From contig NC_000964.3 of assembly GCF_000009045.1 (NCBI RefSeq), positions 2,170,001 to 2,234,000 on the forward strand: a stretch of 64,000 bases of DNA. The letters run 5' to 3'. This DNA comes from Bacillus subtilis subsp. subtilis str. 168 (GTDB taxonomy: Bacteria; Bacillota; Bacilli; Bacillales; Bacillaceae). Positions 17 through 59,301 of this stretch are shown here, one piece after another (the first letter of the stretch is position 1; each line of letters opens with the position of its first letter). A model generated the notes under the pieces. That model did no database searches and was not told the origin of the DNA. It saw only the letters and a program-made list of their open reading frames with translations. The position numbers were made by a program, and so were the translations under genes.

Positions 17-32
17 TAAAAGGAATATTTTA
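17..32. repeat. TAAAA-N6-TTTTA boundary site
   Basis: TAAAAggaataTTTTA; supplies the yorZ stop codon. Confidence 0.7.
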
Positions 33-242
33 TCCTCTTATTTTGTATTTGATATTTAATCCTAAATGTTCTAATGTCTTCTTAACACTTAAATTGCTGC
101 ATTCATTTTTCACTTTATCGGAATAACCCTTTGCACAACTTTCACAACAGTTGAAGTCTACATAAGTTTTTTCATCGCTGATCCTAAGACAAATTGTTTT
201 TCCGCTTATGTACTCCTTACAGATGTCACATATATGATTCAT
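30..242 (-). CDS. yorZ: Small Cys-rich phage protein (70 aa)
   Basis: ORF MNHICDIC... with AAGGAG RBS; two CxxC motifs. Confidence 0.8.
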   Translation of the reverse strand: MNHICDICKEYISGKTICLRISDEKTYVDFNCCESCAKGYSDKVKNECSNLSVKKTLEHLGLNIKYKIRG

Positions 243-272
243 TAACACTCTCCTTCGCCTCAACGTAAATTT

Positions 273-301
273 ATTATATACATATTATTTGTTTTTGTCT
301 A
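273..301 (-). promoter_or_regulatory. SPbeta repeated element (SPBRE): SigA promoter with embedded MrpR operator
   Basis: TAGACA-AAAACAAATAATATGTA-TATAAT, 17-nt spacer, upstream of yorZ. Confidence 0.85.
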
Positions 302-308
302 TCGGTTT

Positions 309-491
309 TTAAATAATTTCTTTAATATTTTTCAGCTTTGCAAAAACAGACATTATATCTTTATCACACCGCTCCCAAACACGCTTTTCTTCAGGCCTTA
401 AAGTGTTTTCTAAATAAACATAAAGCTTATCCAATACTCCTTCAGCAGCATCTATATCATCAATTACAAGATCCCTAACAATATCCTTAAT
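309..491 (-). CDS. yorY: Hypothetical phage protein (60 aa, ATT start)
   Basis: Hand-translated (M)KDIVRDLV...KEII; GGGAGAGG RBS upstream of ATT; missed by the ORF track. Confidence 0.75.
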
Positions 492-503
492 GATACCCTC
501 TCC

Positions 504-731
504 CTATGAAAATATGGTTATTGCTTTTCCATTGTCATTTTTTATGTATGGGGAATATTTTCGGTCTAGGCAATTCTTCGACTTTCCTTCTCCCAGGCTT
601 ACATTATAAATATCCCCTACCTCATAAACTTCGTATGCTTGTTCTTTTGCATGTTCAGGTGATAGCGCCTCAATAACTAGAGACGCATTTTCACCTTTGC
701 TGTCTTTACACCTTACATAATACTTTTTCAA
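504..731 (-). CDS. yorX: Hypothetical phage protein (75 aa)
   Basis: ORF track; position in SPbeta gene order. Confidence 0.8.
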   Translation of the reverse strand: MKKYYVRCKDSKGENASLVIEALSPEHAKEQAYEVYEVGDIYNVSLGEGKSKNCLDRKYSPYIKNDNGKAITIFS

Positions 732-770
732 TAAACATCCCTTTATCCTTTCATTTTTTCTCGAAACAAT

Positions 771-1136
771 TTAATGAATCAAGCCTTGATATGTATTTGG
801 TTTAATATTGTGTAGATTGTTTAGGTTAGTTAACCGCTCGATTTCCTTACTCATCGCATAACATTGATCAACATAAAATTTCTTTGGCATAATCACAAAC
901 TGGCCATCTTTAAATCCTTCCGCACCGGCTTCTTGCATTGCTGCTGGAAAGATATCAATTAGACTACCTTTCTTAAAGCTCTCAATATACTCATCTACTG
1001 AAATAGTGTGCAAAACCTTAGCTAATACTCCATTAGTCTTTTCATCGTTATGTACGTAAATGCTTTGTGTATGTGGTTCAATAACTACAAAATCAAGAGC
1101 GTTTACCAAGTCAATTTTTTCTTGATCAGTTAGCAT
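771..1136 (-). CDS. yorW: Hypothetical phage protein (121 aa)
   Basis: AAAGGAG RBS before MLTDQ. Confidence 0.8.
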   Translation of the reverse strand: MLTDQEKIDLVNALDFVVIEPHTQSIYVHNDEKTNGVLAKVLHTISVDEYIESFKKGSLIDIFPAAMQEAGAEGFKDGQFVIMPKKFYVDQCYAMSKEIERLTNLNNLHNIKPNTYQGLIH

Positions 1137-1138
1137 AT

Positions 1139-1357
1139 TCACTCTCCTTTTAAATACGACTTGAAAAACTCACTTAAGTTATCAGCCATAGCTGCAGCAA
1201 CTTCAGAAAAGTATTTATGTCTTTTCTCCTCTGATTTCAAAAACTCAACTGTCGTTTCTGCAATTTCTTTAATCTTGTCTTCTTTGATATTTCCATTCCT
1301 AACACGCTCTTTAATCTCCTCTGTCTCTTTTTTTAGGGACTCTGGGTAACTATCCAA
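1139..1357 (-). CDS. yorV: Hypothetical phage protein (72 aa, TTG start)
   Basis: AGAGGAG RBS before TTG at 1357. Confidence 0.75.
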   Translation of the reverse strand: MDSYPESLKKETEEIKERVRNGNIKEDKIKEIAETTVEFLKSEEKRHKYFSEVAAAMADNLSEFFKSYLKGE

Positions 1358-1400
1358 TCGATCCACTCCTCTTATTTTATATTTGTTTAAAAGACAAATT

Positions 1401-2732
1401 TTATTCAGATTCTTTATTAACATATGTATGTATTAATTCTTGAAATATAGACTCAAGCACACTAACTGTAATTGAATTACCGGCTTGCTTGTATAATTGT
1501 GAGTTACTTATTCCTGCTGCAAAAGCTTTTTCAAAATCTTCGTCATCAAATGCTTGGAGTCTCCAACATTCTAATGGAGAGAGCTTTCTAATTTTATATT
1601 TTGGGTATTCTCCGATTGCTACACCATGTCGATCAATTGTATTAACCGTGAAAGCCGGTTCTCCGTTTTCTTTAAAACGTCTTCCATTCTGTCTTTTCTC
1701 TTCTCTTTCTGGCGTTAACACTGCCCTTACTTCTTTCTGCTTTTCTGCGATTTTAGGTTCTCTGTGACCGCCGCCCATTGTAGTTAATGTCGGTGAAAGT
1801 CCTTCAGGCGAGTAAACTCTTTTGATGGCATCGTGACCTTTTAAATCCACGTGTCCCACCATTAACGGCTCCCTTACTTCTTGTTTTTGTAGCGGTGCGG
1901 TTCCTAGTTGCTCAACAAGTTTCTTCGTCTTTTCTTCATTTAAGTAATACTTCTCATCAACAAAATCCTCAAGAATTTCTCTCAACCTCTTTGTGACAGT
2001 GTCTTGTAAAGGCCATTTAAAATTAAAACTCTTTATATTTATTTCTTGCAATCTCTTTTTACCTTTACTCAGAACATCGTTTCGCTTCTGACCTACAACC
2101 CATTGTTCATTTTCAACCAAATCTTCTCTAATGCCAATTATGTATACCCGTTCACGATTCTGTGGAACATTGAAAAACTTTGAATTAAGTAGCTCTAGGT
2201 CAATCCTATAGCCTATATTGTTCATAGTCTCACTAATTATTCTTAACACTTGTCCATTGCCACTATTAATTAGCCCTTTTACATTTTCTAATATCACAAA
2301 TTTCGGCTTCTTCTCTTCTGCTAACAAAGCTGTTTCAAAAAAGAGCGTTCCCCGTTCATCTTTAGCCTTAGAAACAGCTTCACACTTCGGGCATTTGACT
2401 CCCTTCTTATAATCCTCATAAGTAATTAAATGCTCGTGCGAACAATTGCTACACTTATATTCCATACCATCACGGCCGCCGGCTACTGAAAAAGTGGGAC
2501 AAGGAAATCCACTTGTTAACAAATCAAAATATGGAATATTATCTTTCTTAGCTTTACTTATGTCTCCAACATTCAATGTTTCACTTACATTATGAATTGC
2601 ACAATAAGATTTGATTGCATATTTATCTATTTCACTAAAGCCAATCAGTTCATAATCAACGCCTATGTTTCTTAATGCAGCTTCAAATGCACCAATTCCA
2701 CTAAAAAGGCTCATTACACGTAGTTTACTCAA
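1401..2732 (-). CDS. mtbP: Multispecific C5-cytosine DNA methyltransferase (M.SPbeta)
   Basis: Motif I FSGIGAFE, catalytic GFPC, ENV, two TRD-like segments, QAGNS motif X; GGAGG RBS 7 nt before TTG. Confidence 0.97.
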   Translation of the reverse strand: MSKLRVMSLFSGIGAFEAALRNIGVDYELIGFSEIDKYAIKSYCAIHNVSETLNVGDISKAKKDNIPYFDLLTSGFPCPTFSVAGGRDGMEYKCSNCSHEHLITYEDYKKGVKCPKCEAVSKAKDERGTLFFETALLAEEKKPKFVILENVKGLINSGNGQVLRIISETMNNIGYRIDLELLNSKFFNVPQNRERVYIIGIREDLVENEQWVVGQKRNDVLSKGKKRLQEINIKSFNFKWPLQDTVTKRLREILEDFVDEKYYLNEEKTKKLVEQLGTAPLQKQEVREPLMVGHVDLKGHDAIKRVYSPEGLSPTLTTMGGGHREPKIAEKQKEVRAVLTPEREEKRQNGRRFKENGEPAFTVNTIDRHGVAIGEYPKYKIRKLSPLECWRLQAFDDEDFEKAFAAGISNSQLYKQAGNSITVSVLESIFQELIHTYVNKESE

Positions 2733-2767
2733 CAAACAACCTCCATATATTTTATTTTTACTCTAAA

Positions 2768-2783
2768 TAAAATTGATCTTTTA
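2768..2783. repeat. TAAAA-N6-TTTTA boundary site
   Basis: TAAAAttgatcTTTTA; supplies the yorT stop codon, upstream of mtbP. Confidence 0.7.
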
Positions 2784-2900
2784 TTTTAATTTCTTTAGCA
2801 CTTTTTCAAACTCTGTTTTTGCTTCGTTCATAATTTGATATACCTTGTGATGAATTGTTGACTCACAAGAAGCTGACAGTCTTTTAATAAAACGTTCCAC
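2781..2900 (-). CDS. yorT: Hypothetical protein (39 aa, GTG start)
   Basis: Hand-translated MERFIKRLS...KKLK with AAAGGAG RBS. Confidence 0.7.
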   Translation of the reverse strand: MERFIKRLSASCESTIHHKVYQIMNEAKTEFEKVLKKLK

Positions 2901-2931
2901 TGTTTTCTCCTTTCTGGATAAATGAGATATT

Positions 2932-3450
2932 TTAAAGTAATTTTCGTTCAATCTCTTCCCAATTCATAACACGAATAAATCTATTTTCATTCCTGTTATG
3001 GGGAGCATCAAATAGTATCTTCATTCCTTCAAATGATTCTAAGTTATGTATTCCATCATCGATCATGATGTCTGCTTTAATTATGTTTTTATTGCCACAA
3101 AGCACAACATTGCTATGAGGAATAAATGGAAAATATTCTGTAAGCCATTCAAGCTTTGCTTTAAGGGAATCTGGATGGTTTGTTGCTGTAGTCACAACAT
3201 ACACTTCATATTTCTTCATCAGCTCTTTTGTCACTCTTTGGCTACCTTCTATAACATTTAGATTTCTGAACAAATCGTAATCTAAATGTCTATAAACATT
3301 ATTGTTGGTATTTGTATATTTTTTTATATCCCAACATAGGATGTCTTTCTCTTTGAGAAAAGGATCATCGTATGTGTTAATGTAAGCTACCCAATCACTT
3401 AGTAAATCAGCTAAGACCTGATCCATGTCAATCGCAATTACTTTTTTCAT
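2932..3450 (-). CDS. yorS: 5'(3')-deoxyribonucleotidase, HAD family
   Basis: DMDQVLAD HAD motif I; MIDD motif. Confidence 0.92.
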   Translation of the reverse strand: MKKVIAIDMDQVLADLLSDWVAYINTYDDPFLKEKDILCWDIKKYTNTNNNVYRHLDYDLFRNLNVIEGSQRVTKELMKKYEVYVVTTATNHPDSLKAKLEWLTEYFPFIPHSNVVLCGNKNIIKADIMIDDGIHNLESFEGMKILFDAPHNRNENRFIRVMNWEEIERKLL

Positions 3451-3458
3451 AAATTCCC

Positions 3459-3956
3459 CTATTCCACTAAAAAGATTATGTCTTTAGCAATTTCGTCACT
3501 TGACCATTGTCCAGTATCCCATGAATATGTATGTAATCCCGCATTGCTCATAACTTCTCTGTACAACTCTAAAATTGAATCAATGTCTTTTCCCTCTATA
3601 TACTCATCTCCACGTACCCTCAACCTTTTCTTAATAACGCTTGGATCAGCGTGTAAGTATACAACCTTCGCTTTTGCTTTAATTTTATCCTCAATAAATC
3701 TAAGCTGTCGCTCTGTAAGGATCGAGTAATCTTTGAATTTCTTTGCATATACCAAGTTAGAATAAACAAACCTGTCAATAATCACGTTGTCTTCATCAGC
3801 TAGTTTATTGAAGTGTTCAAATAACTTCTCATTTCCGCTTTTGGCCAACTCAAAGCTTGAACCTTTGATAATTGGATACTTCAGTTCTTTACTTAGCTTT
3901 GCTGCAACTGTTGATTTAAAGCAGCAATCAGGCCCCTCCAAGATAATTAATGTCAT
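3459..3956 (-). CDS. yorR: Nucleotide (thymidylate-like) kinase
   Basis: P-loop ILEGPDCCFKST; DRF motif. Confidence 0.9.
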   Translation of the reverse strand: MTLIILEGPDCCFKSTVAAKLSKELKYPIIKGSSFELAKSGNEKLFEHFNKLADEDNVIIDRFVYSNLVYAKKFKDYSILTERQLRFIEDKIKAKAKVVYLHADPSVIKKRLRVRGDEYIEGKDIDSILELYREVMSNAGLHTYSWDTGQWSSDEIAKDIIFLVE

Positions 3957-4111
3957 TAATCCTCCACCTTCCTTACTTTATGAAATCCAACAACCTGGTA
4001 AGTGCCATCAGGATACTTTACTTCTATCTGGTTGTATCGATAATCAACTTTCGCAACAGCTCCAATCTCATCTGTAAAATCAACAATTACCTTTTGACCT
4101 TTTTTAAACAT
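3956..4111 (-). CDS. yorQ: Small SH3/KOW-like protein (51 aa)
   Basis: Hand-translated MFKKGQKVIV...KVED; GGAGG RBS; stop overlaps the yorR start. Confidence 0.8.
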   Translation of the reverse strand: MFKKGQKVIVDFTDEIGAVAKVDYRYNQIEVKYPDGTYQVVGFHKVRKVED

Positions 4112-4319
4112 AAGCTAAACCTCCCTTTAGTGGTGTTAATTCATGTTCTTTAAAGTAAGTAATGTCACCTGTTTCATCGCTAACTGCATAGTCATATGTA
4201 GCTGAATGTAAATGCTCGATAATCTTTCCTTTTCTCCCCACATGATGTGGGCATCCATATCGTGCATTATTGTTAATTTCTACAGCTAGTCCAACAGGAT
4301 AACTCCAGTATTTAGGCAA
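4104..4319 (-). CDS. yorP: YorP-family small protein (71 aa, TTG start)
   Basis: GGAGG-type RBS before TTG; MPKYWSY... Confidence 0.8.
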   Translation of the reverse strand: MPKYWSYPVGLAVEINNNARYGCPHHVGRKGKIIEHLHSATYDYAVSDETGDITYFKEHELTPLKGGLAYV

Positions 4320-4351
4320 TTTAATACCACCTCCCCTCAATAAAAAACCTC

Positions 4352-4549
4352 TTAATCTTCTGTTACTATTCTCGAAACCTGTTTTTCATTAAACCCAAGG
4401 GACGACAAGAACCTCTTAAAATCATCTAGCAACAATCTAGGGATTTCCCCTTTATGTTCTTCAATAATCGACGGTTTATAAGTCTTATTTAATCTGGTCA
4501 CCTGTCCATATTCGTCTGTGAATGACATTTCAATTTGAATACACTTCAA
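4352..4549 (-). CDS. yorO: Hypothetical protein (65 aa)
   Basis: ORF track; gene order. Confidence 0.75.
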   Translation of the reverse strand: MKCIQIEMSFTDEYGQVTRLNKTYKPSIIEEHKGEIPRLLLDDFKRFLSSLGFNEKQVSRIVTED

Positions 4550-4584
4550 TTATCTCACCCTATTTTTTATTTTTGTCATGCATT

Positions 4585-4743
4585 TTAACTGCTTGTTGCC
4601 ATAACAACATCATCAAAACGTCTTTCATCATAAGTTCCATCATAATAACAGAGTTCTACTGTTTCTGTTTCAGGATAGATCGCTTCAATAATCCCACGCT
4701 CTCCAGTTGATTTTACCTTAGCCTCTTTATCCAAAATGAACAT
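4585..4743 (-). CDS. yorN: Small SH3-like protein (49-52 aa)
   Basis: Hand-translated MFILDKEAKV...ATSS; exact start uncertain. Confidence 0.7.
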   Translation of the reverse strand: MFILDKEAKVKSTGERGIIEAIYPETETVELCYYDGTYDERRFDDVVMATSS

Positions 4744-4851
4744 CCTCTTCACTCTCTCTATGTAATAGTTTTCCTTGGGATAAATTTCATGTTATGTATT
4801 GCATCGAACGAATTGTTGAAATGTTTATACCTTTCAGTCATTTGGATCGAT

Positions 4852-5568
4852 TTACCAGCTTACTCTTACATTTTTACGACCAAATGCATTTGCTTCTTGC
4901 TCACTGTCCATTAGAATATCAATACGATTGTTTTTAATGTCCCCTCCTGTATCTATTGCATATGCTTGAAAGCTATTTCCTTCATATGAAACTTGCACTA
5001 ATGAATACAAAGGAATTACTTCTGGATCAACAGCAATTATTCTTTTTCCATTGTAATAGGATGTGTTTGATACATCGTAGCCGGTTCTTGTTTTCCCTGT
5101 GCACCCTGTAGAGCAAAACGCAGTATAAGCAGTAGCAACAACTTCATGACTCTTCACTGCCTTTGCATTTGTACTTTTTGAAACTGCTTTATCAAGATTT
5201 CTCTTTGTATTGGTTTTTTGCACTTTTTTTGTTTTTGTATGTTTTGCTGCTTTTTTATTTTCTTCTGTTAGATATGTAATTGTCGCATTAAGATACTTTT
5301 TTCTACTTTCAGCCTGCTTTTCTTCCTCACTCTTTAGCCTAGGAAGGATTCTTGGAACGTCAATTTCGTGAATAAGTTTTTGCCTCACCTCTTTTTTATT
5401 TAAATAAAATGACTTTTTTATTGAGACTTGATTATCTTGATGTGTATACAAGTTTTTAGCGCTATATACGAGCCCTACTCCTAACAAACCAATTGTAGCA
5501 AAAAGTGCCATTTTGTTAATTCTATGATATACATATTTTTTATGTTTGTCTATAAGTTTTTTGAAAAT
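4852..5568 (-). CDS. yorM: Membrane-anchored 3D-domain peptidoglycan hydrolase
   Basis: Hydrophobic N-terminal segment, Lys-rich linker, C-terminal 3D domain (ATAY..AVDP..IPL..DTGG..RIDI); frame is open upstream to an ATT at 5568 with a GGAGAG RBS. Confidence 0.85.
   Translation of the reverse strand: MFKKLIDKHKKYVYHRINKMALFATIGLLGVGLVYSAKNLYTHQDNQVSIKKSFYLNKKEVRQKLIHEIDVPRILPRLKSEEEKQAESRKKYLNATITYLTEENKKAAKHTKTKKVQKTNTKRNLDKAVSKSTNAKAVKSHEVVATAYTAFCSTGCTGKTRTGYDVSNTSYYNGKRIIAVDPEVIPLYSLVQVSYEGNSFQAYAIDTGGDIKNNRIDILMDSEQEANAFGRKNVRVSW
5524..5552 (-). promoter_or_regulatory. SPBRE promoter/operator
   Basis: TAGACA-AACATAAAAAATATGTA-TATCAT; lies inside the 5' end of the long yorM frame. Confidence 0.8.
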
Positions 5569-5595
5569 TTTTATCTCTCCTATATCAGTTAAGAT

Positions 5596-9513: not shown

Positions 9514-9525
9514 CTTTTCTCCCCC

Positions 9526-12407: not shown

Positions 12408-13922
12408 TCATCCTGCTTTTATATTCAATTTCTCAACTGTGATTAGTTCATTGTCAAGATTTGTTGTGAAACAGTCCTTTATCCGCATGTTGCCCATATT
12501 GATATGGGAGAAGACTTTAACTTTGTCATACTCATTTCCCCTATTTTTAAATACATGTGTAACAAAATTTGGCTCTGGATAAAATCCTTCTTTTAAAATT
12601 GGATCAATTGCATCCTTCTCTTTTTTACTTAAAGGAAGAATTATCATTGCAGCATCTGTTTTATCTGCGATGGCCTTACTTCCTCTCAAGTAAGAAGCAT
12701 CTATTACTTGTCCTTTTAACCATGCTTCTTTCCAATCACCATTTAGCTGAGTTGCACTCATCATATAGACATCGTATTTGTTACATAAGCCTTTTAACTT
12801 ATCTGACATAAGTAAAAGAATTTGGTCTTCCCTCAAGTTGACACCGCTTTTTTTGCTCATCTCTGAAAAAATGGTTACTGATGAGTGAATATAATCGAAA
12901 TAAACGTACTCTACATTGTTTTTAATGACGTTCTTTTCAATTGTTCTTTCAATCTCCTGAATATTAAAATCAGGCAGATGTTCGAACCATATGTTAGACT
13001 CTTGAAGAACCTTAGCAGCCTTACGAACAAGTTGTTTTTCTTTTTCATTGATTGTGTTTCTAAGGATTTTTTTCTCTTCTACACTACTAATGTAGGCAAG
13101 TGCTAAACTTTGCAATTCTTCGGCCATCATTTCTGTTGAAATAACTGTAGAACTTTCACTCCATGGGTTTGATACCCATTCCTTCTTTTTAGGATCATAA
13201 AGTTCAGTTGCACTTAAGCGACAAGCGTCAGCGACCATGTTTCTTGTTTTACCGCCACCTGTAATACTTGAGCGCAGATAGAACTTTTTCTTCCGTGATC
13301 CCCGAAAAATTGAAGTAAGCATTTCGCTATTTAATGGAACTCCAATATCCGGCGACTCTTCGAATGAATCCAATAATTCATTAATACCTTCTCCACCCTG
13401 GATTCCCACACTTTCAGATGAAGTTCTGAATTTTTCTTTTATGTCTACAATCTTCATTTCATAAGCTGTCAAAATTTCATCAATCGACTTCTTATCAAAC
13501 TGTTCTTGCATCTTTTCTTGTTCTTTTGGGTCAATCAGAGATTCATCATATATTTCCTTAATATCGAATCCCAAGCCATCCATTTCTCTAAGCAGACTAA
13601 ACTTTTTTAATCTTTTATAGTGGTAATCAAAGTTTTCGACAACTGCCAACTCTTGTATTTTTTCTATATATTCAAGACCCTTATTATCATGGAAAATTTT
13701 ATATTGAATATCGTAATCCTTTAGATATCCATCTATTTCAACGTCATTCAATACTTCAGTTCCTTGATGAAATAGGTTGCTCATGGCAAAAAATAATATT
13801 GAATGAAACCTTGAAGGAAAATCATCCGAAGTTATCTTATATTTATTGCTCTCTGACAAGATTGTGGGATCTTTTAAAATGCTCCCTAAAACTTGAATTA
13901 TTGCCTGTTTGTCTTGTAGCAA
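12408..13922 (-). CDS. yorI: Replicative DnaB-like helicase
   Basis: Walker A GGGKT, STEM, FDYI, SATQLN, IADKTD motifs. Confidence 0.92.
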   Translation of the reverse strand: MLQDKQAIIQVLGSILKDPTILSESNKYKITSDDFPSRFHSILFFAMSNLFHQGTEVLNDVEIDGYLKDYDIQYKIFHDNKGLEYIEKIQELAVVENFDYHYKRLKKFSLLREMDGLGFDIKEIYDESLIDPKEQEKMQEQFDKKSIDEILTAYEMKIVDIKEKFRTSSESVGIQGGEGINELLDSFEESPDIGVPLNSEMLTSIFRGSRKKKFYLRSSITGGGKTRNMVADACRLSATELYDPKKKEWVSNPWSESSTVISTEMMAEELQSLALAYISSVEEKKILRNTINEKEKQLVRKAAKVLQESNIWFEHLPDFNIQEIERTIEKNVIKNNVEYVYFDYIHSSVTIFSEMSKKSGVNLREDQILLLMSDKLKGLCNKYDVYMMSATQLNGDWKEAWLKGQVIDASYLRGSKAIADKTDAAMIILPLSKKEKDAIDPILKEGFYPEPNFVTHVFKNRGNEYDKVKVFSHINMGNMRIKDCFTTNLDNELITVEKLNIKAG

Positions 13923-20870: not shown

Positions 20871-20886
20871 TAAAAAATTACTTTTA
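20871..20886. repeat. TAAAA-N6-TTTTA boundary site
   Basis: TAAAAaattacTTTTA; supplies the yoqY stop codon. Confidence 0.75.
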
Positions 20887-21304: not shown

Positions 21305-21320
21305 TAAAATATCGTTTTTA
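21305..21320. repeat. TAAAA-N6-TTTTA boundary site
   Basis: TAAAAtatcgtTTTTA, intergenic yoqY/yoqX. Confidence 0.75.
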
Positions 21321-23680: not shown

Positions 23681-23696
23681 TAAAATAAATATTTTA
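23681..23696. repeat. TAAAA-N6-TTTTA boundary site
   Basis: TAAAAtaaataTTTTA. Confidence 0.75.
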
Positions 23697-24039: not shown

Positions 24040-24055
24040 TAAAAACTATCTTTTA
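24040..24055. repeat. TAAAA-N6-TTTTA boundary site
   Basis: TAAAAactatcTTTTA; supplies the yoqS stop codon. Confidence 0.75.
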
Positions 24056-25059: not shown

Positions 25060-25172
25060 TATCTCCGCTCCTTTAAATCACGATTTTAATTTAACTTTAA
25101 TGTGTATCATCTTGAGAAAATCCCCTTTAATTGGTAAACTCATACTTAACTTACATAAGAGTAGGTGATTCC

Positions 25173-28033: not shown

Positions 28034-28049
28034 TAAAACAGTCTTTTTA
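28034..28049. repeat. TAAAA-N6-TTTTA boundary site
   Basis: TAAAAcagtctTTTTA, intergenic yoqI/yoqJ. Confidence 0.75.
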
Positions 28050-28834: not shown

Positions 28835-28850
28835 TAAAACTTCAATTTTA
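28835..28850. repeat. TAAAA-N6-TTTTA boundary site
   Basis: TAAAActtcaaTTTTA; supplies the yoqG stop codon. Confidence 0.75.
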
Positions 28851-29105: not shown

Positions 29106-29149
29106 TTTTATTCCCCCGATTCTCATTAAACTTCAATTAGACTCTGTTT

Positions 29150-30359: not shown

Positions 30360-30375
30360 TAAAATGCATCTTTTA
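30360..30375. repeat. TAAAA-N6-TTTTA boundary site
   Basis: TAAAAtgcatcTTTTA, directly after the yoqC stop. Confidence 0.75.
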
Positions 30376-32716: not shown

Positions 32717-32804
32717 GTGATATCCCCCTCCAATTCGAATCTCGATGAAACTTACATTTTATCCACTAATTTTAATTTTGTTACCTTAGTGAAAATTACA
32801 CAAT

Positions 32805-36681: not shown

Positions 36682-37758
36682 TTATCGCTCATTTACATGC
36701 TTTATAAACTTTTTTAATGTAACAAGATCAGCGTTTTCAAAAAAACTAATAAAATCCTCTTGGGTTGCTTCATATAGTGGATTTAAATCGATTTTTTCAT
36801 CCATTGTTACACCAGCAGAGTTCGCTATGTTAATCTTTCTGCTCATATATCTCTCTGTTGTTAATGTGTTTTTATGATTTCCTTGTTCTTTTGCTGCAAG
36901 TAAATCGTGACCAGAATTCTCATAGACATAGTCAATTCCTACACCCTTAAATGAGTGTAAGACTAATTCTCTTTCAGGAGGTATTCCTAACCTTTTTTTC
37001 GACCTTTTTAAGGAGTGTCGTAAAGATTGTTCCGAAAGCCCCTGAAAAACCAATTCAGTTTCGCTGTCATCCTCTTCCTTCAGCTGCAACAATTCCTCAT
37101 AAAATACCTGGTTAATGCCTGTAGACACAACCTGAGATCCTTTATCAATAACTGTTACTATATAATGGCCTGTACTTTCATCAAGCTGTATGTCTTTCCA
37201 TCTTACTCGCAAAATCGCACTTACACGAAAAGAAGTTCTGATGGCGAATTTAACAAACAGCTTTTTCATTAAAGGTTTCTGTCTTTCATTTATATACATA
37301 TCCTGAGCGATTCTTTCGGCTTCTGTCTGGGTTGTTTTATCCCAGTTTTTAGTTACTGTTTTAAGCCTTTCGACAGTATTAAACACCGACAAGTCAATAT
37401 AGTCCTTATAATCATGCTCCAAATATGTATAGAGCATCTTCAAGGAGGTCATTTTTCTGTTAATACTATTATTAACTAATCCCTTTTCCTGAAGATACTT
37501 CACATAGTTGCTTAATTCGCTTTTACTTACAACTAAATCATCGGGAACTAAACTTTTGACATCTTTACCTTTAATCACACTAAAGAACTGCTTAATATCC
37601 CCTTCATAATTCTTTCTGGTGTTCGACACCCTTCTAGTTGATGAAGGCATCATATAGTTAGAATTCCCTGAGCTACTTCTTATATCTTTATTGATTAAAA
37701 AGCCCTCGATATCATCGTAAACCGCATAATTTTTTAATTGTTTAATTTTATTTTGCAT
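36682..37758 (-). CDS. yopP: Tyrosine recombinase-like protein (SroD)
   Basis: FRVSA (R), DKG (K), LHSFK, QGNH, TERY motifs. Confidence 0.9.
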   Translation of the reverse strand: MQNKIKQLKNYAVYDDIEGFLINKDIRSSSGNSNYMMPSSTRRVSNTRKNYEGDIKQFFSVIKGKDVKSLVPDDLVVSKSELSNYVKYLQEKGLVNNSINRKMTSLKMLYTYLEHDYKDYIDLSVFNTVERLKTVTKNWDKTTQTEAERIAQDMYINERQKPLMKKLFVKFAIRTSFRVSAILRVRWKDIQLDESTGHYIVTVIDKGSQVVSTGINQVFYEELLQLKEEDDSETELVFQGLSEQSLRHSLKRSKKRLGIPPERELVLHSFKGVGIDYVYENSGHDLLAAKEQGNHKNTLTTERYMSRKINIANSAGVTMDEKIDLNPLYEATQEDFISFFENADLVTLKKFIKHVNER

Positions 37759-40281: not shown

Positions 40282-40314
40282 AGACACAATGAGGACTAAA
40301 CCTCATTGTGTTCT
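40282..40314 (-). terminator. Terminator after yopJ
   Basis: ACACAATGAGG-actaaa-CCTCATTGTGT. Confidence 0.6.
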
Positions 40315-40330
40315 TCTAAAGCAAAAGGTC

Positions 40331-40747
40331 CTACTTAAGGCTATAATACACCTCTTCCGCAATATCCTTTGCAAACCTAGCGAAAATTTCTCTATCAAAA
40401 CTTCTTAAGCATTTAGCTAAGGACAGGATATTCTGCACATGGTCAAGTGTATTAGTCAAATCTAATGCCGTTACCAAAGAAAGCAACATGTCTTTGTAGT
40501 TCATATCTCCGGCAACGCCTTTATAAACCACATGTTGCCGTTCATCGAAAACTGGGGCATTCTCAGATAGGTGTATATCAAATTTCGCAGCGATATCCTC
40601 CCGCTCTATAGATATCAACTCTTTAATTAACTCTACTAATTGCTGTTCACTCAAATTAGAATAACTTGCTCTCAATAAATTAAAGGAATCAACACCTATT
40701 TCACCATGGAGGTCTTCCCATCTAAAATATAAAAATGTGTTTTTCAT
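40331..40747 (-). CDS. yopJ: Hypothetical protein (138 aa)
   Basis: ORF track; gene order. Confidence 0.82.
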   Translation of the reverse strand: MKNTFLYFRWEDLHGEIGVDSFNLLRASYSNLSEQQLVELIKELISIEREDIAAKFDIHLSENAPVFDERQHVVYKGVAGDMNYKDMLLSLVTALDLTNTLDHVQNILSLAKCLRSFDREIFARFAKDIAEEVYYSLK

Positions 40748-40748
40748 T

Positions 40749-41282
40749 TTAAAACTCCCCTAAGAATACTTTGTACATTTTCCCGTTATGATCTTTTGCC
40801 TCAAGATAAACCCTATTGCATTTTTTCACTTGTTTAGTTTCCTTTTCGTTTAAAAATTTTATTATATTAATAGCGATGATTTGCTTAGAAGGCAAATTAA
40901 TATTAAATAACTTATCCCTGTAATAGCCAAACTCAGCAAACTCTTCAGTTGTTGCTTTATCATCAGGGGTAACAGAAACAATTAAATTTGTGTTTTTGTA
41001 AAAGCAAAATTTAATTTCCCGTAGAACCTTGGGGATCTCAGCGCCATTGTATATTTCAATCTGGGAGTGTATTTCTATTTGCTTTGCTTCATCTTTAGAT
41101 GGCATAACATTAGTTCCCCAACCATCATTATCGGTTTTAAAATATATTTCAAAGTCAACTATATAAAATTTAATTTGCCCAAAGTGCTTTAATATGTGAG
41201 TAAGAATTAAAGTGACTATAACTCCCAATAAAGCCCCAATGATACCTTCAAAATTAGAAATTATTTCTCCTATATTATTCAA
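40749..41282 (-). CDS. yopI: N-terminally membrane-anchored protein (177 aa)
   Basis: TM segment GIIGALLGVIVTLIL. Confidence 0.82.
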   Translation of the reverse strand: MNNIGEIISNFEGIIGALLGVIVTLILTHILKHFGQIKFYIVDFEIYFKTDNDGWGTNVMPSKDEAKQIEIHSQIEIYNGAEIPKVLREIKFCFYKNTNLIVSVTPDDKATTEEFAEFGYYRDKLFNINLPSKQIIAINIIKFLNEKETKQVKKCNRVYLEAKDHNGKMYKVFLGEF

Positions 41283-41308
41283 ATTTGAATATTTCCTTTC
41301 TGTATGTC

Positions 41309-42764: not shown

Positions 42765-42780
42765 TAAAACACTTCTTTTA
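42765..42780. repeat. TAAAA-N6-TTTTA boundary site
   Basis: TAAAAcacttcTTTTA. Confidence 0.75.
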
Positions 42781-47009: not shown

Positions 47010-47025
47010 TAAAATATGCATTTTA
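47010..47025. repeat. TAAAA-N6-TTTTA boundary site
   Basis: TAAAAtatgcaTTTTA. Confidence 0.75.
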
Positions 47026-49513: not shown

Positions 49514-49765
49514 TTAGTGTGACTTGTTTCTTAGTTTAAGGAATACACAATAGATGATCCATAACAATATGGCAATGATACATGTGACAACAAAAATTGT
49601 GTTGATTAGCGCCTGTCCTTCGCTGCTGAAGTAATCTTTGATGAGTTGAAACATTAAGAATAAGCCAATGAATGTGATATGGGTAAACCATAATGAGAAT
49701 CGTTTCATGTTTGCAATGTGCTTGATCATGTTATAATATGGGTAGGAACTAAAGGAGAAGTTCAT
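49514..49765 (-). CDS. yoyJ: Membrane protein, second gene of the yonT TA locus
   Basis: 83 aa, two TM segments, directly downstream of yonT. Confidence 0.78.
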   Translation of the reverse strand: MNFSFSSYPYYNMIKHIANMKRFSLWFTHITFIGLFLMFQLIKDYFSSEGQALINTIFVVTCIIAILLWIIYCVFLKLRNKSH

Positions 49766-49845
49766 TCCCCTTTAGCTTAGCTCTCATCGGCGTATACGTT
49801 GGCGTTGTCTCTTTGGTCGGAGCCGCTTGCGTATACGCTTTTTCT
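49744..49845 (+). ncRNA. SR6 antisense antitoxin RNA
   Basis: Extended -10 TGtTATAAT at 49729-49737; overlaps the yoyJ start and yonT 3' end; ends in a GCGTATACG hairpin plus T-run; known SR6 arrangement; ends approximate. Confidence 0.6.
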
Positions 49846-49960
49846 TTTTGCTTGTCCCATTCTTTAGGTTTCTTACCTTCTCAACTATTGTTAGACTGTT
49901 GATTGTAAGAACCGTTAAAGATATGAGGAAAGCAACTACGATACCCATTTTCTCAAGCAC
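49784..49960 (-). CDS. yonT: Type I toxin (58 aa, GTG start)
   Basis: One TM helix plus very basic tail; AGGAGGTG RBS. Confidence 0.9.
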   Translation of the reverse strand: MLEKMGIVVAFLISLTVLTINSLTIVEKVRNLKNGTSKKKKRIRKRLRPKRQRQRIRR

Positions 49961-52534: not shown

Positions 52535-52573
52535 ATCAAAAAATATGCATAAAAGTAATAAGGGGAGAATTTA

Positions 52574-55093: not shown

Positions 55094-55336
55094 AAAGTGC
55101 CTTGAGCCTTACTCCCCCAAGGTGTACAGCGATTTTACCGAAAAAAACTTCAACAAAAAAGTGTCTTTATCCCTTGGTGCTACTGGGTTGAGAGCACTTT
55201 TGGAGATAATCGTCATAAGGGAGACAGAAAGCTAATTTCCACATAAAAGGGCTAGTACGTTTCCCCCGTCTATATAAAAGACAATCTTTATTGTTCATTT
55301 AGAATAAATTTAATAATACTTAGGAGGAAATTGATT

Positions 55337-55615
55337 ATGAATAAAACAGAACTAATCGCTAAAGTGGCAGAAAAACAAGGGGTATCTAAAAAAGAAGGAG
55401 CTCCCAGTGTCGAAAAAGTCTTTGACACTATTTCAGAGGCATTAAAAAGTGGAGAAAAAGTAAGTATTCCTGGTTTCGGAACATTTGAAGTTCGTGAACG
55501 CGCAGCTCGTAAAGGGAGAAATCCCCAGACAGGAGAGGAAATTGATATTCCGGCTACAAAAGCACCTGCATTTAAGCCAGCAAAAGCACTTAAAGACGCA
55601 GTCAAAGCTAAATAA
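55337..55615 (+). CDS. yonN: HU-like DNA-binding protein
   Basis: [33 protein letters not shown]. Confidence 0.97.
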
Positions 55616-55619
55616 TCAG

Positions 55620-57280
55620 TTAATGAGGACGACAGGAAAGGCTACCTGCACGCTTTGTCACAAAGAGCTTATGCTCCTAAAAGTGGCAGAGTTGGAAGTT
55701 ATGGAGGAAATTGTCGACCTCCCCTCTTTTCGCTTTTCATCTTCAACTCCGGGTTAATTAATTATAGTTATTTATTTATGGCATGGGGGTGCCGTCAATA
55801 ATTAGTTGATTACTGATATTTGGGATATCAGTTCTCGACTAATGTTCATTTATGAAGGTAAAGACTAATCTAAATGAATATTAGTGGAGATTCCTCTCCA
55901 GTGTGAACTAGCTTTTCTCGATTAAACAATATCTACTCCCTTCTTTTCTGTATCATTCTGACACAAAACTGCGGCTGGTCATTGCAGTTAGTCGGATAAT
56001 AGTCATTTATGAGGGTGCGAGGTTAACTCGGATGTCTGTATCTTCAGGAGACAGATAAATGGCTATTATCGGGCTAAACATGTCGGTAAGACCTTTGCTA
56101 CTCAAGTTTTTTATGTAGGGTGAATCCCATCACAGTCTTACTATGGGTGACATGTATCCCTGAATATTAATTGCGGTGTACTGCTTCGGCTTACACTTAG
56201 GGAATGTAGATGCGTCTCCCTTCCCTTTAAATAATGCCCTTGTAAGCTTCGATGCTTATTATGCGGTCAACAAAATTTTTCCGGGTAAACGAGGCTTTGA
56301 AATTACATACCCTCGTAAAATAAGTGATATGGTTTTGGGCGCTTGATCACCGCTGTCATTTCACAGAAAAGGATTATTTTCGGTCTTGCCTTTTCCTTTC
56401 ACTTAGTAACATATTCGCTACTTTTCCTTCAAGAAACTTACCTTTCCCATGCACATACCTCCTTACACGGGTCAGAGAAAACTGTGCAAAATAAATGGCG
56501 AGAGTTTGAGACGCTTTGTTTCTCAATAAGGCGTGTAACCTGACAAGAGAGACTGAAAACGCCATTGAGAAGGCTTATAATGGGTCTTTCCTTCTCATTA
56601 TTGGTGTTTCGCCACCATAATGTGTCGAGGTTTAGAGTTAGTATTTCATTGTCTGATCGAGAGTAGCCGATTAATCCCGCGTGGGGGACACTAAAGATAC
56701 CGCGATACGTCCAGCTTTGGGATTCCTTCCATTGCCGCTACTAATCAAGGCTTCACTGTGAATTCAGAGATTTTACACAGTTCTTAAATGAATTAGCTCA
56801 TCTGCCATGTGCAGAAGGAGAATCAGTTTTCGCACAGCGATTACCGGTTTATATGCTCATGTACCATGATGTACAAGGAGTTCCTGAAGACGTTATTTTG
56901 GCGTCTTTTGATATTTCGACTTACTTATAGTTTGTCAACTGCAAAGGTTTCAGTCGCTGAACCCGTAATCAGCGTAATCCCTGTCGATCTGAAGGCTTGC
57001 GTCCCAACGTGAGCTAATGACGTAGGTGAAACGGGGTTAGAATGTAATCAGAACAAGGTCATCTAAATCGTTAGAAGGCCTTTTTGTGCTTGCGTTTTAC
57101 TGATCAGCCGGAATGTGTTTACGAGCCTTCCGGTACGCAAGTTATCAATAATCTCCTTCGGGCGTTTCCCCAACGCCTATCCGACTTATCTTTCATCTCC
57201 TTTATATCCCCTTCTCGGACGTTACCGATGCTTCGGATCATCGGGCTTCCGAAGGAGCTTATTGTACGTAAATAGAAAAT
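55620..57280 (+). ncRNA. Putative large structured non-coding RNA (about 1.7 kb)
   Basis: No credible ORF; many stems with + strand G-U pairs, UUCG loops and long-range helices (see findings); ends approximate. Confidence 0.6.
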
Positions 57281-57296
57281 TATTGGAGGAATTTAA

Positions 57297-57488
57297 ATGG
57301 CAAGCAAAAAAGTACATCAAATTAATGTTAAAGGCTTTTTTGATATGGACGTAATGGAAGTTACTGAACAAACTAAAGAAGCTGAATACACATATGATTT
57401 CAAAGAAATTCTTTCAGAGTTTAATGGAAAAAATGTTTCAATTACTGTAAAAGAAGAAAATGAACTTCCTGTTAAAGGCGTTGAGTAA
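57297..57488 (+). CDS. yonK: Hypothetical protein (63 aa)
   Basis: GGAGG RBS. Confidence 0.85.
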   Translation: MASKKVHQINVKGFFDMDVMEVTEQTKEAEYTYDFKEILSEFNGKNVSITVKEENELPVKGVE

Positions 57489-57504
57489 GGAGATGACTGA
57501 CTGA

Positions 57505-58722
57505 ATGATCGATCCTGTTCAAACTAAGCGTCACTCAGATGAAAACCTTAAAGAATGGAAAATAAGAATCTGCTCTAATAAAGACATTTATAATCTAAAC
57601 TGGGAAGAAATCAAAGAGTTAATCAACAAGGAAACTGGTGAATCTAAAGGTGAATCAGCTTATAGAAAATGGTTCAACAACTTCATTGAAGGAGTTGAAT
57701 ACCAACGAGAAAGGTCAGATGAATCAAATAATTCTCTCCTTGAATTGGAACTGAAAAAGGTTGAAATCATGGAAGAGAGAAAAAAGCTTCAAGCTGTAAA
57801 GCATGAAATACATAAAAACACACGCGTCAAAGGCCGAACAGAGCTGCTATATGAAAATGTAACTGAAGCAATTGAGAAAGTAGGTACTCTCCCTCCCCCT
57901 TCCTTCTATCCATTAAATAAGAACGAAAGAAAAAGAGCTGCTGTTCTAGGGTTTGGAGATGAACACTTCGGGAAGCAATTTAAAAGCAACAACAATGAAT
58001 ACAACGAACAGATTTATTTGCAGCGTATGAATCAGATTCTTTCTGAAACTGTTGAGTACATTCAAAAAGAAAATTTAGATGAGCTGGTCGTGTTAAATGG
58101 TGCTGACAGTGTTGAAGGTATGGCATTGCGCGTATCGCAATTAACTGCCCTTCAGTACGGGTTTATTGACCAAGTGATAAAATACTCTAGGTACAAAGCT
58201 GAATGGCTTTTAGAACTTTCTAAGCACGTCAAAATTAAGTACATACATATCCCTTCTGCAAATCATACTGAACTAAGATTACATAATACAAATCGCTCGG
58301 AAATGCCTAAAGAAGATGTAGAGCGTATTATAGCTACTTATATCCATGACGTACTCAAAGACAATGAGCGAATTGAAGTTCCTTTATACGACGAAGGAAT
58401 TGTGGATTTTAAATTACTTGAATTTGAAATTGTCGCATGTCACGGACACCAGATTAAAAACAAAAAGAATGCCATTCGTGACATCTCACAGATGAAACGA
58501 AAATTCTACGATTACATGTACATCTCCCACTTCCACCACGGAAACATGCTCACTGTAGGTGAAGCAGCCACTCATAATATCCAAGTTATACAACTCCCTT
58601 CTGTAATGGGTTCCGATGAATACAGTGACAGCTTAATGACAGGTGCCAAAGCTGGAGCAAACCTTTCAATTTATGAGTCCGGTAAAGGTCGGATTATTCA
58701 ATACGATTACATATTAAATTAA
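57505..58722 (+). CDS. yonJ: Calcineurin-like metallophosphoesterase
   Basis: GDEHFG, GADSVEG, SANH, CHGH, SHFHH motifs. Confidence 0.85.
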   Translation: MIDPVQTKRHSDENLKEWKIRICSNKDIYNLNWEEIKELINKETGESKGESAYRKWFNNFIEGVEYQRERSDESNNSLLELELKKVEIMEERKKLQAVKHEIHKNTRVKGRTELLYENVTEAIEKVGTLPPPSFYPLNKNERKRAAVLGFGDEHFGKQFKSNNNEYNEQIYLQRMNQILSETVEYIQKENLDELVVLNGADSVEGMALRVSQLTALQYGFIDQVIKYSRYKAEWLLELSKHVKIKYIHIPSANHTELRLHNTNRSEMPKEDVERIIATYIHDVLKDNERIEVPLYDEGIVDFKLLEFEIVACHGHQIKNKKNAIRDISQMKRKFYDYMYISHFHHGNMLTVGEAATHNIQVIQLPSVMGSDEYSDSLMTGAKAGANLSIYESGKGRIIQYDYILN

Positions 58723-58751
58723 AGAAGGCTCCTATTAGGCCTTCTTTAATT
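58717..58751. terminator. Bidirectional terminator between yonJ and yonI
   Basis: AATTAAAGAAGGC ... GCCTTCTTTAATT. Confidence 0.7.
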
Positions 58752-58755
58752 AGGT

Positions 58756-59166
58756 TTATCTTGTAAATCCCTCTAAGTCTTTAACGTGAGTAGATACATC
58801 TTTTATAAAGTCAATTGTTTCAGGCGAATCATTCAAGTAATCAACTGTCAATAATTCCTTTTCTTTAATCTCACTGATGAGATTTCTAATAACATTTTGA
58901 AGCTCAGTTTTTTTATCTGTAATGAAATAATACTTAACTCGATTACCCTCACGTGAAATTCCTAATCGATCAACTGGCTGTGTAGATAATTTATTTAATA
59001 CACCTCGAAGAACTCCATTTCTATATTCACCATTCTTAACAAGTTCAGGTATCTTTTTTGCTAGTTCTTCAAGCAGCTCTTTTTCTGTAAGAGGGTGTTT
59101 TGAACCCTTTAAAATCACTGGTATATTTTTACGTACAAGATCTGATAATGTAACTTTGTTTTCCAT
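58756..59166 (-). CDS. yonI: Putative winged-helix DNA-binding protein (136 aa)
   Basis: GGGGAG RBS; HPLTEKELLEEL helix pattern; antisense within the late region. Confidence 0.75.
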   Translation of the reverse strand: MENKVTLSDLVRKNIPVILKGSKHPLTEKELLEELAKKIPELVKNGEYRNGVLRGVLNKLSTQPVDRLGISREGNRVKYYFITDKKTELQNVIRNLISEIKEKELLTVDYLNDSPETIDFIKDVSTHVKDLEGFTR

Positions 59167-59285
59167 AACGTGATCTCCCCTTTAGATATCGTAATACATA
59201 AATAGTGTAATCCACTTTTTTATCAGATGTCAACATCCAATAGTGGATTTTTAAACCTAAAGTTAAACTATTAATCTTTTTTTGA

Positions 59286-59301
59286 TAAAACTTTAATTTT
59301 A
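59286..59301. repeat. TAAAA-N6-TTTTA boundary site
   Basis: TAAAActttaaTTTTA, intergenic yonI/yonH. Confidence 0.7.

Follow-up and report, generated by a model that had tools for sequence, protein, structure and literature searches.

The closest described relatives of the element discussed here are site-specific recombination systems and recombinogenic linkers. In lox systems, the identity of the spacer sets the partner of a site, sites with different spacers can coexist, and a block flanked by two sites is exchanged in register (recombinase-mediated cassette exchange), FRT variants behaving alike. Arrays of such heterospecific sites are, to our knowledge, a laboratory design, and we know of no natural system that has been described. 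In integrons, the attC site acts as a folded single strand whose structure, not sequence, is conserved, and mobile cassettes enter at one attI site, their order reflecting their history. In T4-type phages, PeSL elements consist of a sigma70-like promoter and a terminator hairpin and act via homologous recombination between copies (PMC2839356, PMC4122927). Here, we describe an inverted repeat, TAAAA-N6-TTTTA, that recurs in the SPβ prophage of Bacillus subtilis 168, in a stretch of 64,000 nucleotides (NC_000964.3, positions 2,170,001 to 2,234,000; hereafter the window) that reaches from yonE to yorZ and in which early genes on the minus strand predominate. We report the anatomy of the motif, the conservation of its spacers and of their order in related phages, and junctions that fall exactly at the sites, which are very probably crossover points where related phages exchange neighbouring gene blocks.

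In its anatomy the SPβ site resembles lox and dif, in its evolutionary effect it resembles PeSL elements, and in its behaviour it is unlike an integron. As in loxP, inverted arms surround a short asymmetric spacer, one SPβ protein, YomM, aligns with Cre over its N-terminal half with Arg-I in place, and the outcome known from heterospecific lox sites matches the conserved order and flank reassortment of the SPβ sites. However, loxP has a 13-8-13 layout and occurs once in phage P1, whereas in SPβ the layout is 11-6-11 (core 5-6-5) and a genome has about 30 sites, and the SPβ candidate enzymes have Lys at the Arg-II position. XerCD/dif shares the 28-bp site with 11-bp arms and a 6-bp centre, and the SPβ protein YopP is annotated as XerC-like, but the palindrome is unrelated to B. 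subtilis dif, and a replicon has one dif, serving dimer resolution, where SPβ has many centres. The likeness to integrons lies in the order of site, ribosome-binding site (RBS), gene and site, in promoterless blocks within an operon and in content that varies among relatives; the SPβ sites differ in having no stable fold, arms of invariant sequence, an address of their own at each position and a fixed order. ComK boxes of B. subtilis, which are pairs of AAAA-N5-TTTT, likewise place an A-tract and a T-tract about one helical turn apart, but the SPβ motif is strictly N6, has conserved flanking T/A and outer arms, and occurs as single sites, not as pairs. PeSL elements too are short intergenic repeats bordering variable genes, with indels and replacements ending at the motif (PMC2839356, PMC4122927); the SPβ palindrome, in contrast, has neither a promoter consensus nor a stable hairpin, it is strict and its spacers are position-specific, and the early promoters of the phage are separate elements, termed SPBRE. 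No description of the motif was found in the searchable literature or in GenBank annotation, a scope that does not include the 1999 genome paper of Lazarevic et al.

A palindrome of fixed spacing at gene borders

The window contains 20 exact copies of TAAAA-N6-TTTTA, compared with 1.15 ± 1.04 expected from dinucleotide shuffles (shuffle maximum 4). When arm spacings from N0 to N15 were scanned, N6 gave these 20 copies and each other spacing 0-2, and everted and direct arrangements of the arms in the window showed no enrichment over background. With 5-mer frequencies fixed, 16 copies were found in the intergenic DNA of the window versus 0.34 expected, and 4 in its coding DNA versus 0.9. The whole SPBc2 genome (NC_001884) holds 34 exact copies, making this by far the top 5-N6-5 palindrome (the runner-up has 6), and 28 of the 34 exceed the 99th percentile of background when scored with a flank matrix. 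The intragenic copies at 12580 (yorI), 34417 (yopR) and 46639 (yopA) have background-like flanks and are probably chance matches, leaving about 17 of the 20 window copies as true intergenic sites, and about 30 per genome.

Could the motif as a whole have arisen by chance from an A/T-rich composition and from TAA stop codons? The genome has a G+C content of 34%, and the three intragenic copies do look random. However, the excess over shuffles, the enrichment at N6 only, the intergenic excess with 5-mers fixed and the retention of the motif in 56 relatives and in Geobacillus virus E3 leave a chance origin with practically no probability; the spacing scan together with the comparative data already refutes it.

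Relatives were compared in six full regions and in 50 IMG/VR prophage loci fetched around ligB (~1 Mb), sampling being deep only around that gene. The motif is present in every SPβ-like phage examined, with 11-23 copies per 48 kb in phi3T, SPbetaL2, L4, L5 and BUCT083, and the 50 prophage loci contain 415 copies at N6 against 11-30 at other spacings. In Geobacillus virus E3, whose proteins, YomM apart, share 23-60% identity with those of SPβ, we counted 15 copies in 50 kb versus 1.8 expected, at N6 only and just upstream of RBSs. A Staphylococcus SPbeta-like phage has 7 copies versus 1.0 expected, a weak excess in which most copies are unconvincing, and no comparable palindrome was detected in the first 50 kb of Lactococcus phage 949; on these grounds we dropped an extension of the system to other phages with YomM- or YopP-like 'integrases'. 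A scan of IMG/VR with the 28-bp consensus was uninformative, since the matches listed were mostly A/T-rich giant-virus contigs.

A previous, sequence-only reading of the window had listed 15 perfect copies at gene boundaries and two more inside coding sequences (5405 and 34417). All of these coordinates were correct on recount, but the copies at 1388 (after mtbP), 12580 (yorI) and 46639 (yopA) had been overlooked, and the intergenic-versus-coding count that it had put forward as a check gave the excess reported above. Among its three degenerate copies, that at 25073 stands as the SPβ copy of a conserved slot with spacer TCGTGA, whereas those at 29137 (two arm mismatches) and 43511 (N7) lack support as members; the copies at 2919-2934 and 32746-32761, one degenerate and one variant, are additional to its list. 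Both intragenic copies had been suspected of being background, which is true of 34417 but not of 5405. An SPBRE promoter/operator lies at window 5526-5540 (SPBc2 110909-110923), within the annotated yorM coding sequence and upstream of the 5405 site, and a good RBS follows the site, which therefore belongs to the 5' untranslated region of yorM and not to its coding sequence; the annotated yorM start is probably too far upstream. The first arm had been said often to be the TAA stop codon of the upstream gene, and this holds at yorZ, mtbP, yorT, yoqY, yoqS and yoqG. An RBS within 5-35 nucleotides of the site, claimed to be usual, is found at about half of the sites and, chance copies excepted, there are indeed no sites between the core replisome genes or in the sro operon.

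Spacers, flanks and the exchange of gene blocks

The 415 sites in the 50 prophage loci draw on only 47 spacers, each of which occurs once per locus, and no duplicated spacer was found in any genome. Spacers follow one another in the order TGTAAG, GATGCA, GTAAAA, TTGAAG, AGACTG, GGATTA, TCGTGA, TCTTGT, GATAGT, TATTTA/TAGTTA, CAGAGA, ACGATA, GTAATT and TGATAA/CTGTAG. This order is conserved in ~48 loci, with distances between neighbours ranging from 0.2 to 6 kb and with some members missing from some genomes. The genes on either side of a site vary: with flank classes defined at 75% ungapped identity, a single 16-mer (arms plus spacer) joins up to 18 unrelated left flanks (AGACTG) or up to 19 unrelated right flanks (GATGCA), and nine spacers are positive in a four-gamete test. 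Similarity between relatives usually stops where the 16-mer does. Where two joints have only one flank in common (1,298 pairs), the identical 16-mer is retained in 83%, and the six full regions contain 49 same-spacer pairs without any common flank, versus ~1 expected.

Block ends between relatives are concentrated at the sites. Whereas positions within 8 nucleotides of a site make up 1.06% of the sequence, 91 of 430 homology-block ends fall there, and 64 of 102 palindromes (63%) have a block end within this distance, compared with 3/25 SPBRE elements, 7/51 phi3T-type boxes and 12/49 AGGAGG RBSs (12-24%) taken as control motifs. Gaps between collinear blocks (n = 165) have both ends at sites in 18 cases and one end in 72. 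Three indels run exactly from site to site, the two spacers differing; in phi3T, for example, the helicase gene is followed by the TGCATA site, seven genes and the TCGTAC site, and in SPbetaL5 it is followed directly by the TCGTAC site. All three retain the downstream spacer, but a polarity of such events was not upheld, as the larger set is balanced: on the left, 15 of 136 flank classes occur with more than one spacer and, on the right, 16 of 158, for the most part owing to point changes or deletions. The spacers themselves mismatch at a rate of 0.04-0.05 per nucleotide versus 0.064-0.083 in homologous flanks, a difference between non-independent pairs that is only suggestive of constraint on the spacers.

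Together, these comparisons bear out the proposal that the sites delimit exchangeable gene blocks, given that the relatives keep the 16-mer, spacer included, while one or both flanks are replaced by unrelated genes. The proposed coincidence of gene gain and loss with the sites is seen both in the share of sites with a block end and in the existence of site-to-site indels. Two further parts of the proposal are not supported. Cassettes are not mobile between positions, since the spacer is a fixed address and spacer order is conserved, and integron-cassette logic fails because there is neither a common attI nor a folded attC.

The blocks include genes that counter host defences. A 'dedicated anti-Gabija locus' has been described in SPβ-like phages (Yirmiya et al., bioRxiv 10.1101/2023.05.01.538930); this locus is one slot of the site array. 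Gad2 forms a single-gene block between the CAGAGA and ACGATA sites of SPbetaL6 (L184:2798-4000), Gad1 (L127:20167-21054) and three small genes lie between the same two sites in SPbetaL4, and SPβ has ACGATA only at this slot. The SpbK inhibitor gene nip (phi3T_120; L126:28666-29505), whose position in phi3T has been reported (PMC11984713), is found in a block that abuts the TATTTA site directly upstream. Three experimentally validated counter-defence genes, gad1, gad2 and nip, lie in site-bounded blocks.

Two junctions formed in the laboratory also map to sites. Dragos et al. obtained 17 unique SPβ/phi3Ts junctions from experimental evolution (bioRxiv 10.1101/2020.05.06.055103, Suppl. Table 1), whose coordinates we converted by a relation (record = 2286449 - chromosome) that held at two published landmarks. 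Assigned in this way from printed coordinates, the junction sequences not having been deposited, junction 7 (30 bp homology) falls in SPβ on the site TAAAATGCATATTTTA at window 47010, upstream of yopA, and in phi3T on the same 16-mer, and the 'non-homologous' junction N1 has its SPβ endpoint 1-2 nucleotides from the site at 17-32. An identical TAAAATATTCCTTTTA is present in phi3Ts at MT366945 107397-107412. The two site junctions belong to epDNA C19 and C25, the deposited hybrids Hyb1-3 having long-homology junctions only.

Recognition of the site, candidate enzymes and rival explanations

On the sense strand, the extended motif reads ARTYTNRA-TAAAA-N6-TTTTA-WNNARA, with A at +21 in 20 of 20 window sites and in 90% of 117 unique sites from seven phages. 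The outer elements, TYT at -6 to -4 and ARA at +19 to +21, are mirror images of each other, so that the whole site forms an imperfect palindrome of 28 bp, in which arms of 11 bp surround the 6-bp spacer. This layout is a better match to tyrosine-recombinase geometry than the sequence-only reading had noted. Across 1 Mb of related DNA, the 10 positions of the inner arms are almost invariant, and only two single-mismatch variants are enriched at N6, TAAAA...TTTCA (53 versus 5.5) and its mirror, TGAAA...TTTTA (41 versus 7.7). Folded into a hairpin, the arms would form five A-U pairs, at a free energy of 0 to +1.2 kcal/mol; in the 117 unique sites, pairing between mirrored flank positions does not exceed what column composition predicts, and no Rfam family matched at the sites. 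The left outer arm is conserved even where it lies within coding sequence. Because mirrored transitions are tolerated, the hairpin is unstable and flank covariation is absent, our analysis points to recognition of the motif on double-stranded DNA by a symmetric, probably dimeric, protein. A dimeric DNA-binding protein had been named as an alternative to a recombinase; it is compatible with our results, forming part of the best explanation and of its main rival alike.

These properties also bear on whether the motif acts in mRNA, as a processing, termination or translation signal before the RBS, with junctions coinciding merely through the short gap between stop codon and RBS. Sites do follow stop codons, lie 3-15 nucleotides ahead of the Shine-Dalgarno sequence in SPβ and especially in E3, and are present in early and late operons alike. 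Against this, a hairpin would be unstable and is backed by neither covariation nor an Rfam family, and the sites do not have the G+C-rich hairpin and U-tract of an intrinsic terminator, offering instead a 5-bp A-U stem, at or above ~0 in free energy, followed by A-rich sequence. The commonest variant, TAAAA...TTTCA, would give an A-C mismatch in the sense RNA, yet its mirror is equally tolerated, a symmetry of double-stranded DNA, and the mirror symmetry of the outer arms persists even if the left arm is coding. Some sites, furthermore, sit upstream of promoters or after terminators, and conserved spacers joined to unrelated flanks would be left unexplained. The RNA processing or termination signal, which had been offered as a further alternative, is thus disfavoured, and we consider it very improbable.

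The palindrome is also distinct from the operator of MrpR (YopR), the integrase-fold master repressor of SPβ. ChAP-seq of MrpR gave only 10 peaks, all at SPBRE promoters (PMC10516654), so that this repressor is not the binder of the palindrome. Derived from the 10 MrpR-bound promoters, the SPBRE of SPβ reads tAGACAAAnAcAAAwAATATGTATAwA, an asymmetric combination of a sigmaA-like promoter and an operator; equating it with the palindrome was rejected, as sequence and positions differ. SPBRE sometimes adjoins the palindrome, namely at aimR, yorE, yosX and yorM. It is the other repeated element of the SPβ genome, and its binder has a tyrosine-recombinase fold, but SPBRE overlaps ~10 sigmaA-type early promoters, is bound by a monomer and changes with immunity type, whereas the palindrome is constant. 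The phi3T counterpart of MrpR, likewise a monomer on its DNA, recognises a box of 26 bp (bioRxiv 10.1101/2025.11.27.690993). Phages of the SPβ type have 6-10 SPBRE-like elements versus 0-2 in those of the phi3T type, and 2-4 phi3T-type boxes versus 14-15; given these opposite distributions, the operator sets co-vary with immunity type, while the palindrome and its outer arms are identical across the SPβ and phi3T immunity types. Phages of the phi3T type carry 14-15 copies of an A-rich leader, AGAATAAAAATAAAAT(TA), per 46-50 kb, and those of the SPβ type carry 2-4. SPβ keeps a few phi3T-type boxes, and two SPβ copies of the leader, at SPBc2 120654-120679 and 132761-132786, are within three mismatches of the 26-bp box crystallised with phi3T SroF.

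Which protein might act at the sites? Integration of SPβ is catalysed by the serine recombinase SprA. Besides MrpR, which has lost the catalytic set, the family retains two tyrosine-recombinase homologues, YomM and YopP, both of which match generic Phage_integrase/SAM-like Pfam models. SPβ and phi3T have the same YomM (100% identity), and the E3 protein (L185:24138-25115) is 82% identical to that of SPβ, while its immediate neighbours share 23-38%; a 64%-identity allele exists within B. subtilis phages (Goe11-14, L5, L7, L8). With its likeness to Cre and this degree of identity, YomM is at least as good a candidate as YopP. The YopP orthologues of phi3T and E3 hold the full set R-K-HxxR-H-Y, for which reason an exclusion of YopP on the grounds of divergence was dropped and YopP remains a candidate. 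We found no literature on yomM. In E3, GP146-GP148 (L132:36015-39465) correspond to the yopR-yopQ-yopP trio, encoding an integrase-fold protein, a DndB-like protein and an Xer-like recombinase, in the SPβ order and with 31-34% identity; the trio therefore predates the B. subtilis phages and is not tied to arbitrium.

The 11-6-11 geometry, the invariant arms, the conserved position-specific centres, the absence of duplicate spacers and the preserved order are what heterospecific tyrosine-recombinase sites would be expected to show. In such a scheme, a symmetric, probably dimeric, protein of the phage family would read the 28-bp site on double-stranded DNA, the arms being the same at all sites and the 6-bp spacer being specific to its position within a genome and common to the corresponding position in other phages. 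The sites lie after the stop codon that closes one gene block and ahead of the RBS that opens the following one, and only those of the same spacer would pair productively, so that exchange would occur in register and slot order would be preserved; neighbouring blocks would be exchanged at the sites between related phages and occasionally deleted between two sites. The chemistry would be a lox/dif-like tyrosine-recombinase reaction, a natural counterpart of recombinase-mediated cassette exchange with heterospecific sites, and the enzyme would be YomM, Cre-like and a core gene product of the family, or YopP. This lox-like, spacer-addressed exchange through YomM or YopP as candidate enzyme is the explanation we lean towards, while stopping short of calling it probable. 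In its broader form, in which about 30 heterospecific lox-like sites and one conserved Cre/Xer-like recombinase may let co-resident phages swap cassettes including gad1, gad2 and nip in register, sparing their genomes from scrambling and deletion, we put it forward as a tentative proposal.

Several observations weigh against a recombinase. The active-site columns of YomM and of SPβ YopP read R-K-HxxK-H-Y, with Lys at Arg-II, YopP is only 31-33% identical between phages with identical arms (33% for SPβ versus phi3T), and MrpR sets a precedent in SPβ for a recombinase fold that only binds DNA. The 82% identity of YomM to E3 may reflect either strong constraint or a transfer of this gene. As for the junctions, 75 of the 165 gaps touch no site at either end, exact sites account for only 21% of block ends, and deletions from site to site across different spacers conflict with strict spacer identity. 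The phages are related, so that pair counts are not independent events, and block ends were taken from BLAST. In the laboratory, 15 of the 17 junctions are ordinary crossovers in 0.4-20 kb of homology (bioRxiv 10.1101/2020.05.06.055103), and the phi3Ts coordinate of N1 as printed lies 15 nucleotides off the site.

Much of this would sit well with the palindrome being a protein site with another job, such as silencing, roadblocking, genome organisation or the timing of accessory genes, and with exchange being a by-product of short-homology recombination, which we hold to be a real if doubtful possibility. The agents would then be the Sak4-like annealase YorG and the RecJ-like YorK, or host RecA, acting on 16-28 bp of identity in a PeSL-like manner, a version to which we give the same doubtful standing. 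SPβ encodes this annealase/exonuclease pair, junction 7 was classed as homologous, over 30 bp, by the authors who described it, and PeSL-mediated shuffling is an established precedent (PMC2839356). Same-spacer conservation at the joints is predicted equally by homology-driven exchange, since same-spacer pairing follows from homology alone, and the Arg-II replacements, the purely DNA-binding fold of MrpR and the many junctions away from sites fall on the same side. However, other conserved intergenic motifs seldom serve as junctions even though they are as long as the palindrome or longer (SPBRE and phi3T-type boxes compared with palindromes, as above), identity as a rule does not extend past the 16-mer, which offers very little length for homologous recombination, site-to-site deletions between unlike spacers share only ~7 nucleotides, and short homology leaves it unexplained why each position should have a conserved spacer of its own. 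Alternatively, a homodimeric restriction-like or homing-type endonuclease could cut the site; breaks inside the spacer would stimulate repair or ligation with a co-infecting genome, and spacer-specific overhangs would hold the joins in register. A palindrome interrupted by a centre of free sequence is a characteristic target of homodimeric nucleases, near-invariant arms are more typical of nuclease sites than of operators, and the phage encodes HNH endonucleases, the DNA ligase LigB and a RusA-like resolvase. Yet cutting each genome at ~30 places would come at a cost to the phage, no nuclease that could serve is conserved together with the motif, the HNH genes vary between phages, and nothing points to genome ends or nicks at the sites. 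We therefore deem a nuclease improbable; it and the RNA signal are less likely than exchange by a recombinase or through short homology.

Why the mosaic boundaries of phages fall at gene borders is an old question, commonly answered either by illegitimate joining at random followed by selection or by recombination between short linkers that are conserved. The SPβ family provides an unusually clean case, with a strict palindrome, a position-specific centre and a junction series kept in dozens of phages and in a Geobacillus phage. If an enzyme reads the sites, they would be a natural system of a new kind and would give phage mosaicism an enzymatic engine of its own. The two orphan tyrosine-recombinase homologues gain a testable job. 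Sites and enzyme, if one is involved, would also make up a ready-made orthogonal set of recombination targets. Further counter-defence genes are predicted to lie in the variable blocks between addressed sites.

The sites of the window and neighbouring features

Table 1 Sites and candidate enzyme genes, with positions in the window unless stated otherwise and spacers given on the sense strand.
Feature	Position	Strand	Context	Occurrence in relatives
Junction site, spacer TATTCC	17..32	-	Exact; flank score 13.7; left arm is the yorZ TAA stop	
Junction site, spacer TTTGTC	1388..1403	-	Flank score 21.0; left arm is the mtbP TAA stop; yorV start 30 nt downstream	16-mer also in SPbetaL5 and BUCT083, in BUCT083 with another left flank
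Junction site, spacer GATCAA	2768..2783	-	Left arm is the yorT TAA stop; mtbP follows	16-mer also in SPbetaL4, SPbetaL2 and BUCT083; four different left flanks
Degenerate site TAAAATATCTCATTTA, arm ATTTA	2919..2934	-	After yorS	Orthologous site exact in phi3T and SPbetaL5; SPβ/phi3T homology block terminates here
Junction site, spacer AAGTCA	5405..5420	-	yorM 5' untranslated region; flank score 19.1; RBS after it	
Junction site, spacer TGATAA	16936..16951	-	After yorD and its terminator; upstream of the yorE SPBRE promoter	12/50 prophage loci; 5 left flanks
Junction site, spacer GTAATT	20871..20886	-	Left arm is the yoqY TAA stop	22 loci; 7 left x 9 right flank classes; four-gamete positive
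Junction site, spacer ACGATA	21305..21320	-	Between yoqX and yoqY; downstream boundary of the Gad1/Gad2 anti-Gabija slot	38 loci; 9 left x 10 right flank classes
Junction site, spacer TATTTA	23681..23696	-	Just upstream of yoqU	Abutted in phi3T by the nip-phi3T_121 cassette
Junction site, spacer GATAGT	24040..24055	-	Left arm is the yoqS TAA stop	25 loci; 10 left x 15 right flank classes; four-gamete positive
Degenerate site TAAAATCGTGATTTAA, arm TTTAA	25073..25088	-	SPβ copy of the TCGTGA slot	Spacer exact in 21 loci
Junction site, spacer AGACTG	28034..28049	-	After yoqI; one end of a site-to-site indel versus phi3T and SPbetaL4	42/50 loci; 18 left x 12 right flank classes; four-gamete positive
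Junction site, spacer TTGAAG	28835..28850	-	Left arm is the yoqG TAA stop	9 loci
Junction site, spacer GTAAAA	29548..29563	-	Between yoqD and yoqE	25 loci; 9 left x 11 right flank classes; four-gamete positive
Junction site, spacer GATGCA	30360..30375	-	Abuts the yoqC TGA stop; yoqD follows	42/50 loci; 13 left x 19 right flank classes; 34 combinations
Variant site TAAAATGTAAGTTTCA, arm TTTCA	32746..32761	-	Between yopV and yopW; SPβ copy of the TGTAAG slot	Spacer exact in 40 loci; SPβ/phi3T homology block begins at the site
Junction site, spacer TTGGAA	40263..40278	-	After the yopJ terminator; 17 nt upstream of the aimR SPBRE promoter	TAGGAA at the orthologous place in SPbetaL4 and SPbetaL2
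Junction site, spacer GAAGTG	42765..42780	-	Between yopD and yopE; homology block begins 4 nt after	16-mer also in SPbetaL4, with another left flank
Junction site, spacer TGCATA	47010..47025	-	Between yonX and yopA; published junction 7 maps here	
Site between yonI and yonH	59286..59301	.	Late-gene region; exact; flank score 12.3	
yopP, Xer-like tyrosine-recombinase homologue, candidate enzyme	36682..37758	-	Pfam Phage_integrase, E = 1.8e-10	
yomM, other candidate enzyme	SPBc2 40301-41302		Outside the window	

The window corresponds to the reverse complement of SPBc2 positions 52449-116446, with 99.994% identity. At position 407 of the mrpR/yopR gene (window 34763), the window has G, encoding Gly136, where the SPBc2 record has A, encoding Glu136. 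Glu136 in mrpR is the heat-sensitive c2 allele (PMC10516654), and the Gly136 allele thus identifies the window as wild-type SPβ and not SPβc2. Relative to the SPBc2 record, two additional bases are present in a short CT repeat between yorN and yorM (window ~4758), and there is a 1-base difference at position 303 of the yonJ gene. Two RNAs scored above the Rfam gathering score, both on the plus strand: the SR6 antitoxin RNA at 49746-49849 (128 bits), adjoining the yonT toxin region, and the DUF3800-VIII RNA at 56975-57040 (47.5 bits).

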